This document shows positions 19,163 through 19,730 of a stretch of DNA of 64,000 nt, piece by piece. The first letter of the stretch is position 1, and every line of letters begins with the position of its first letter. Source of the DNA: Paragordius varius (lineage: Eukaryota; Animalia; Nematomorpha); NCBI GenBank assembly GCA_964247055.1, contig OZ176050.1, forward strand, positions 7,316,001 to 7,380,000, written 5' to 3'. The position numbers and the translations under genes were made by a program. The notes below the pieces were generated by a model. That model was not told the origin of the DNA, did no database searches, and saw nothing but the letters and a program-made list of their open reading frames with translations.

Positions 19163-19730
19163 ATGGCTTTAAAGCGTATAAACAAGGTTTTAAATTTTAT
19201 TAAAATACAGGAATTGCAAGATTTGGGAAGAGATCCACCAGCTAGCTGTTCAGCGGGTCCAGTTGGAGACGATCGTAATATATAAATATATATTTTAGTG
19301 TTTCATTGGCAAGCTACTATCATGGGACCAGTATATTATAATTAATTATATTTTAGCCCGATAGTCCATACCAAGGGGGTGTATTTTTTTTAACTATACA
19401 TTTCCCCACTGATTATCCATTTAAACCTCCAAAGGTAAGTTTTTTTATAAATTCATAAGGTCGCATTCACAACTAGGATATACCATCCAAATATTAATAG
19501 TAATGGAAGCATTTGTTTAGATATTTTACGCTCACAGTGGTCTCCGGCTTTAACGATTTCAAAAGGTAAATTCAATTTTTATCCCATTAGTTTTGTTGTC
19601 AATATGCTCGCTATTGACTGATCCCAATCCCGATGATCCATTGGTTCCAGAAATTGCAAGAATTTATAAAACAGATCGCAATAAATATAATGAAACAGCC
19701 AGAGAATGGACACGAAAATATGCCATGTGA
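19163..19730 (+). CDS. UBE2D: Ubiquitin-conjugating enzyme E2 D (Ubc4/5, effete), 147 aa, 6 exons
   Basis: Exons 19163-19186, 19211-19274, 19299-19330, 19357-19434, 19460-19565 and 19591-19730 sum to 444 nt: [147 protein letters not shown]. Introns are 24, 24, 26, 25 and 25 nt, all GT-AG. Confidence 0.99.

Follow-up and report, generated by a model that had tools for sequence, protein, structure and literature searches.

The 64-kb stretch of DNA analysed here, referred to as the window, contains an intact UBE2D gene whose coding sequence is interrupted by five segments of 24 to 26 nt. Judged by sequence comparison, it is highly probable that this gene is functional in a bilaterian animal, most likely a nematomorph, and that the five segments are canonical U2-type introns which have shrunk at ancient positions. 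The earlier note had described these and other segments of the window as introns far below the usual animal minimum, and the GT-AG borders, the reading frames and the positional homology presented below are best read as those of genuine spliceosomal introns. Coordinates of the window features are given in Table 1.

The homology searches with the window genes were run exon by exon. The six UBE2D exons add up to 444 nt in frame (147 codons), and the unspliced reading frame reaches a stop after 40 codons. Exons 4, 5 and 6 correspond to positions 39-63, 64-98 and 101-139 of the Pfam UQ_con profile, in contiguous order. Exon 5 is identical to residues 67-101 of human UBE2D2/D3 (35/35) and exon 6 matches residues 103-147 at 40 of the 45 positions; residue 102 is absent from both matches because its codon is split by intron 5. 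The gene thus displays the UQ_con fold, the catalytic Cys in an HPN(x)8C context and the near-identity to UbcH5, and it shares with the UBE2D/UbcH5 (UBC4/5) enzymes the UQ_con domain, the HPN...C motif, the 147 codons and, in the exons tested, 89-100% identity to human. In agreement with the lengths of 24, 24, 26, 25 and 25 nt reported before, all five segments are GT-AG and their removal produces an open frame collinear with UBE2D. Their GC content is 8-24%, compared with 39% for the pooled exon bases. Removal of intron 1 is argued by homology only, because this segment is in frame and contains no stop.

Table 1. Window features and introns found at matching sites elsewhere (UBE2D: evaluable metagenome loci; FRA10AC1: Dendronephthya and Elysia crispata)
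Feature	Position	Strand	Description	Matching introns elsewhere
UBE2D gene	19163..19730	+	UbcH5/UBC4-5 type E2; intact from start codon (ATG, 19163) to stop codon (TGA, 19728-19730), both located by script; 6 exons, 5 tiny introns	
UBE2D exons	19163-19186, 19211-19274, 19299-19330, 19357-19434, 19460-19565, 19591-19730	+	24/64/32/78/106/140 nt	
UBE2D intron 1	19187..19210	+	24 nt, GT-AG, phase 0, multiple of three, no in-frame stops	matching position and phase in 12/58 loci, 43-1021 nt
UBE2D intron 2	19275..19298	+	24 nt, GT-AG, phase 1	2/61 loci, 369 and 768 nt
UBE2D intron 3	19331..19356	+	26 nt, GT-AG, phase 0	42/65 loci, 44-1300 nt
UBE2D intron 4	19435..19459	+	25 nt, GTAAGT...AG, phase 0	6/70 loci, 75-2189 nt
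UBE2D intron 5	19566..19590	+	25 nt, GT-AG, phase 1, splits codon 102	53/71 loci, 45-2467 nt
Reverse-transcriptase-like ORF	23196-23540	+	resembles a retroelement reverse-transcriptase fragment	
FRA10AC1 gene	27453..29528	+	exons 27453-27523, 27545-27775, 27801-27881, 27908-28510, 29486-29528	
FRA10AC1 intron 1	27524..27544	+	21 nt, GT-AG, phase 2, in-frame stops inside	
FRA10AC1 intron 2	27776..27800	+	25 nt, phase 2	matching codon and phase: Dendronephthya 252 nt, Elysia 515 nt
FRA10AC1 intron 3	27882..27907	+	26 nt, phase 2, splits a Trp codon	matching codon and phase: Dendronephthya 124 nt, Elysia 1090 nt
FRA10AC1 intron 4	28511..29485	+	ordinary, 975 nt, GTGAGT...AG, phase 2	matching position: Dendronephthya 129 nt, Elysia 7818 nt
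hAT-like ORF	48869-49890	-	resembles the C-terminal part of a hAT transposase	
Ly6/uPAR-type three-finger protein gene	51532..51952	+	exons 51532-51729, 51752-51952; stop codon 51950-51952	
Ly6 intron	51730-51751	+	22 nt	
NEPRO_N/RMP1-like ORF	51945..52271	-	stop codon 51945-51947	
NEPRO-like candidate intron	52181-52161	-	21 nt, GT-AG	

To compare intron positions we used a set of 80 UBE2D-like loci on metagenome contigs, which had been retrieved with a stop-free 56-aa piece around exon 5. The exon peptides of the window gene were located in these loci, and an intron was counted only if both its exact position and its phase matched. Introns at all five window positions were found in this set, and none of the position-matched introns was shorter than 43 nt. 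The UBE2D gene of the window differs from UBE2D/UbcH5 genes elsewhere in intron lengths only (24-26 nt here versus 43-2467 nt at matching sites). In one metagenome contig (L128), each of the four window positions that could be evaluated carries an intron, of 1021, 369, 503 and 395 nt, and its exons of 24/64/32/78 nt back the UBE2D exon sizes given in the earlier note. Another locus has introns at positions 3-5 (L085). Since removal of the five GT-AG segments gives a collinear protein and their positions match introns elsewhere, chance is excluded as their origin.

These results also bear on the view that the locus is a decayed or processed copy in which the 24-26-nt segments would be insertions. 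Intron 1 would keep the frame if retained, as such a view allows, but all UBE2D exons keep an open frame, with 89-100% identity to human where measured, and the five segments are GT-AG, AT-rich and located at intron positions of other organisms. Moreover, a processed copy would be intronless, and a genome search did not reveal a second UBE2D locus: when the entire assembly was searched with UQ_con in six frames, the window gene was the sole locus of the UBE2D type, and the other UQ_con matches inspected corresponded to UBE2M, UBE2N, UBE2I and a UBE2L3-like gene. We consider a decayed or processed copy most improbable.

Similar results were obtained for FRA10AC1, the gene model of which is supported by tblastn of five homologues; its 603-nt exon 4 matches the Pfam Fra10Ac1 family with E=1e-40. 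The introns of 21, 25 and 26 nt reported previously are upheld by the homologues and the gene model, the region around the 21-nt intron being the poorly conserved N-terminal one. In addition, the gene contains an ordinary intron of 975 nt that the earlier note did not list, and the last exon, located 3' of this intron, encodes REEEFDEYFKDMFL. For comparison, the annotated proteins of Dendronephthya (a soft coral) and Elysia crispata (a sea slug) were mapped exactly onto their own loci. The 25- and 26-nt introns lie at the same codon and in the same phase as much longer introns of both animals, and the position of the 975-nt intron is shared as well (Table 1). Exon 4 spans eight further intron positions that are present in Dendronephthya. 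Over its central and 3' stretches the gene has undergone wholesale intron loss, and its 5' introns survive as tiny ones. A further example is provided by the RhoA gene of the same assembly, in which introns of 23 and 24 nt, the latter in frame and free of stops, occupy the sites of introns of 7283 and 1184 nt, respectively, in the snail Biomphalaria.

Together, the matches of all five UBE2D positions and of the 25- and 26-nt FRA10AC1 positions to much longer introns elsewhere strongly indicate that old introns shrank. The idea that ancestral introns had shrunk rather than been lost stands in its first half and fails in its second: exon 4 of FRA10AC1, lacking eight introns of a cnidarian, shows that intron loss has been heavy too. 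As judged from these comparisons, many other old introns were lost outright alongside the shrinkage of the survivors.

The positional data are equally relevant to the view that the segments are removed from DNA, in the manner of the internal eliminated sequences (IESs) of ciliates or another form of programmed DNA elimination, instead of being spliced from RNA. The size range of Paramecium IESs does overlap the 21-29-nt range found in this genome (see below). The ends of the segments are GT...AG and not TA...TA, though, standard stop codons are used, and in position and phase the segments agree with spliceosomal introns of cnidarians, molluscs and many other eukaryotes. Removal at the DNA level is hardly conceivable in the light of these features, and splicing remains our preferred explanation.

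Two further cases had been reported in the window. The Ly6/uPAR-type gene contains a 22-nt intron, and only its removal leads the frame into the C-terminal half of a ten-cysteine domain. The ten Cys and the CCxxxLCN motif are seen in the spliced frame only; exon 2 matches positions 36-72 of the 72-position Toxin_TOLIP profile (E=1.3e-3), and the three-finger domain ends in CCDANLCN, followed by a hydrophobic tail. For the NEPRO_N/RMP1-like ORF, the 21-nt GT-AG segment is indeed present but its removal is not confirmed, the homology being too weak: the ORF matches Pfam NEPRO_N with E=0.015 and, of the Atlas clusters, the two closest to it have NEPRO_N at 0.87 and 0.84. The NEPRO_N profile found no match genome-wide, and ten ORF pieces upstream of the ORF gave no Pfam signal. 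The segment is a multiple of three and stop-free in frame. Nine of the ten tiny introns listed in the earlier note are therefore confirmed, the NEPRO-like one being the exception. The Ly6 gene and the NEPRO-like ORF lie tail to tail, with an overlap of a few bases between the ends of their coding sequences. Elsewhere in the window, neither the hAT-like nor the reverse-transcriptase-like ORF (Table 1) has a Pfam match at E<=0.01. Coding sequence accounts for about 2.2 kb of the 64 kb, which bears out the description of the surroundings as repeat-rich.

The assembly to which the window belongs was then sampled for introns at E2, proteasome, Ras-family and RPL3 loci, a sample that is small and biased to conserved housekeeping genes. 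It contains 28 homology-supported tiny introns distributed over 10 genes; their lengths are 21-29 nt around a median of 24, the commonest values being 24 and 26. The sample comprises about 55 introns in all: the 28 of 21-29 nt, about 10 of 47-102 nt and about 17 of 170-3300 nt; introns of 30-44 nt are lacking from these, within the limits of so small and biased a sample. RPL3 (L042, G000:C5:4325899-4329453, about 1470-2843) has eight introns of 28, 24, 24, 26, 29, 26, 26 and 24 nt, so that the tiny class is not confined to the 5' ends of genes; its first coding exon consists of the ATG alone and is followed by the 28-nt intron. A UBE2L3-like gene (L009, G000:C1:5691400-5692600) was left out because its C-terminal part could not be reconciled with UBE2L3. 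In this locus the first 114 codons are well conserved, and downstream of a GT-AG segment of 29 nt no C-terminal exon could be recognised; the locus could be a pseudogene or have a distant last exon.

GT at the start and AG at the end were found in all 28 tiny introns, as well as in the five UBE2D introns, the four FRA10AC1 introns and the Ly6 intron. Mean GC content of the 28 was 17%, versus 37% for the ten flanking exon bases on each side. Beyond GT, the donors have A or T at +3 and +4, and G at +5 occurs in only 4 of the 28. The 3' ends are TAG in 18, AAG in 7 and CAG in 3 cases, with T at 61-79% from -5 to -3. A search of these introns for a branch point revealed no consistent TNAY motif and no fixed distance. 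GTRAGT donors are present in 1 of the 28 tiny introns and in 4 of 9 longer ones (Fisher p=0.008), and we tentatively conclude that longer introns have the stronger GTRAGT donors. Length modulo 3 is even (9/10/9, n=28), multiples of three not being avoided. In-frame, stop-free introns of 24 nt were seen in UBE2D (intron 1), in RhoA (intron 2; L049, 1752-1729, minus strand) and in RalA (intron 2; L046, 1713-1736). As such introns contain no stop, their retention would add 8 residues without nonsense-mediated decay. A homology-free histogram of GT...AG segments joining two open frames, made over 133 kb with reversed-signal controls, showed no peak above background and was set aside as uninformative. 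The matches to the FRA10AC1 exon 4 query and to the RhoA exon query included no transcript or protein of the same species.

The earlier note had deduced a remodelled spliceosome from intron lengths of 21-26 nt, and an inventory of the assembly does not support this. The U1 gene (124 bits) has the canonical 5' end ACTTACCTG and the U2 gene (178 bits) the canonical branch-site-binding sequence GTGTAGTA. The SF1 helix-hairpin domain (SF1-HH) was found with 74.9 bits, and a collinear set of U2AF_lg exon matches reveals a U2AF65-like gene. The U1 and U2 snRNA genes are clustered together with many degenerate copies (G000:C6:565000-634000, C6:3718000-3734000, C3:257000-527000 and C2:11950000-11989000), and several of the U2 copies are no more than 15 kb away from a contig end.

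On this proposal, tiny introns need a specially adapted spliceosome, for instance one with changed U1/U2 recognition or with a length-measuring factor. The very weak 5' splice sites described above, with their rare G at +5 and rare GTRAGT, would fit this, as would the narrow length window; U12 snRNA was searched for in the assembly and not found, a result that does not prove its absence. Against it, neither the U1 5' end nor the U2 branch-binding sequence departs from the canonical form, the genome encodes SF1 and U2AF65, ordinary introns occur in the same genes as tiny ones, and myxozoans with introns of 22-27 nt keep conventional U2 and U2AF (PMC13644364). A special adaptation is therefore unlikely, and we favour excision of the tiny introns by a conventional major spliceosome.

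The identity of the host was deduced from several genes. The window lies within the 15-Mb contig C1 of an assembly of 110.6 Mb in 44 contigs. The best match of FRA10AC1 is Gordionus sp., with 70% identity compared with 63-66% for the next matches (a single gene), and the identity of RhoA to Rho1 of arthropods and molluscs is 85-87%. On the mitochondrial contig C44 (L001, G000:C44:5980-10320), which contains cox1 and other genes, two inverted repeats without any spacer, one with 131-nt and one with 97-nt arms, are present at 53-314 and 4064-4257, inside open nad1-like and atp6-like ORFs. Coding palindromes in mitochondrial protein genes have been described from four species of Nematomorpha (PMC6649704). 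Upstream of cox1, the same contig carries a tandem array of ~72-nt units, each with a palindrome of 49-52 nt (L001 770-1472). AGA codons occur at a conserved Ser (107/120 homologues), and this mitochondrial code is therefore the invertebrate and not the cnidarian one, which excludes Myxozoa. A cox1 fragment with six stops is located on contig C1 (L002, G000:C1:10610780-10614097) and is probably a nuclear copy of mitochondrial DNA.

From these sequences the host appears to be a bilaterian and most likely a nematomorph (horsehair worm). An alternative would be that the contig belongs to one of the groups in which tiny introns have been described before (ciliate, myxozoan or dicyemid), either as the source or as a contaminant, in which case the lineage would not be new. 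The intron length range does equal that of these groups (PMC13644364), and the genome is AT-rich and repeat-rich. This is nevertheless very unlikely, given that the window is embedded in a contig of 15 Mb, that nuclear TGA and TAA are both in use as stops, and that FRA10AC1, RhoA, the mitochondrial AGA codons and the zero-spacer palindromes of the cox1 contig, a nematomorph feature, all point away from such a lineage. In particular, the mitochondrial code, the coding palindromes and Gordionus as best FRA10AC1 match are at odds with membership in Myxozoa or Dicyemida. Published hairworm genomes are 200-300 Mb (bioRxiv 10.1101/2024.06.11.598342). The smaller size of the present assembly, together with a 136-aa piece of COX1 whose closest matches are only 76-79% identical, suggests that the host is a smaller-genomed, unsampled relative.

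Introns of this size are a known phenomenon. In Paramecium they are about 25 nt, in Stentor 15-16 nt and in chlorarachniophyte nucleomorphs 18-21 nt; in Paramecium, stop-free multiples of three are depleted, and some tiny-intron protists have altered genetic codes. With ciliates and chlorarachniophyte nucleomorphs, the introns described here share the narrow length peak near the physical minimum, the AT-richness and the minimal signals. Those organisms are protists, however, and unlike in Paramecium the length modulo 3 is even here, with several stop-free multiples of three.

Among animals, a survey of 51 genomes found introns below 30 nt in myxobolids and Dicyema japonicum only (PMC13644364, Mol Biol Evol, September 2026). 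The survey, silent on Nematomorpha in its main text, predicts that further tiny-intron lineages exist. Median introns are 27 nt in Henneguya salminicola and 22 nt in Thelohanellus kitauei and Myxobolus rasmusseni (PMC13644364). The likeness to the myxobolid myxozoans extends to animal GT-AG introns below 30 nt, reduced splice-site motifs, retention of conventional U2 and U2AF, a parasitic host and at least one highly repetitive genome. Myxobolids are cnidarians, whereas the present host is a bilaterian with the invertebrate mitochondrial code, and its tiny introns coexist with many of 47 nt to several kb within the same genes. Dicyema japonicum, with a mean intron of 38 bp and 49% repeats (PMC6736024), is likewise a bilaterian parasite with very short introns and a repeat-rich genome. 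It differs in being a spiralian whose genome measures 67.5 Mb, with some 5,000 genes predicted, compared with 110.6 Mb and nematomorph-like affinities here, where the proteins are also slowly evolving, as illustrated by the identity of UBE2D exon 5 to human. A repeat-rich genome with tiny introns thus has precedents, namely the genome of D. japonicum and that of M. rasmusseni, which is "highly repetitive" according to the title of a paper cited in PMC13644364. Our literature searches retrieved no report of tiny introns in hairworms, and introns are not discussed in the Gordionus genome paper or in the Mermithidae/Nematomorpha comparison. On the sequence evidence, the host would be a third, independent animal lineage with introns below 30 nt: a known phenomenon in a new lineage.

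We propose the following scenario. Deletion bias would have driven the shrinkage of old introns, and transposon insertion would have enlarged others. The UBE2D introns may now have about the smallest size that the major spliceosome tolerates, and would form part of a genome-wide class of 21-29 nt with minimal signals, next to which ordinary introns of 47 nt to several kb are present, sometimes within one gene. The 24-26-nt segments would be excised from RNA and recognised across the intron, that is, by intron definition, and the narrow length range could reflect how closely 5' splice site, branch point and 3' splice site can be packed.

A bolder reading is that the hairworm lineage independently evolved a discrete class of 21-29-nt introns, almost signal-free beyond GT(A/T)...(T)AG, beside kb-sized introns with GTRAGT donors within single genes. 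We regard this as possible but doubtful. If true, it would imply that one spliceosome recognises introns in two ways, length as such serving as a signal for the tiny class.

Tiny introns in an ecdysozoan-type worm whose proteins evolve slowly and whose genome is rich in transposons and not compact would separate intron shrinkage from genome compaction. Such a worm would also offer a natural system where introns of both sizes, tiny and kb-long, are removed from one pre-mRNA. There are practical consequences as well. Aligners and gene finders with a minimum intron of 30-40 nt break such genes, which have exons as small as those of 24 and 32 nt in UBE2D or the ATG exon of RPL3, so annotations and claims of gene loss for the hairworm group need re-checking. 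If the discrete class is real, standard gene finders and completeness scores would under-call genes throughout the phylum, and such under-calling could soften the published claim of a "rampant loss of universal metazoan genes" in Nematomorpha.
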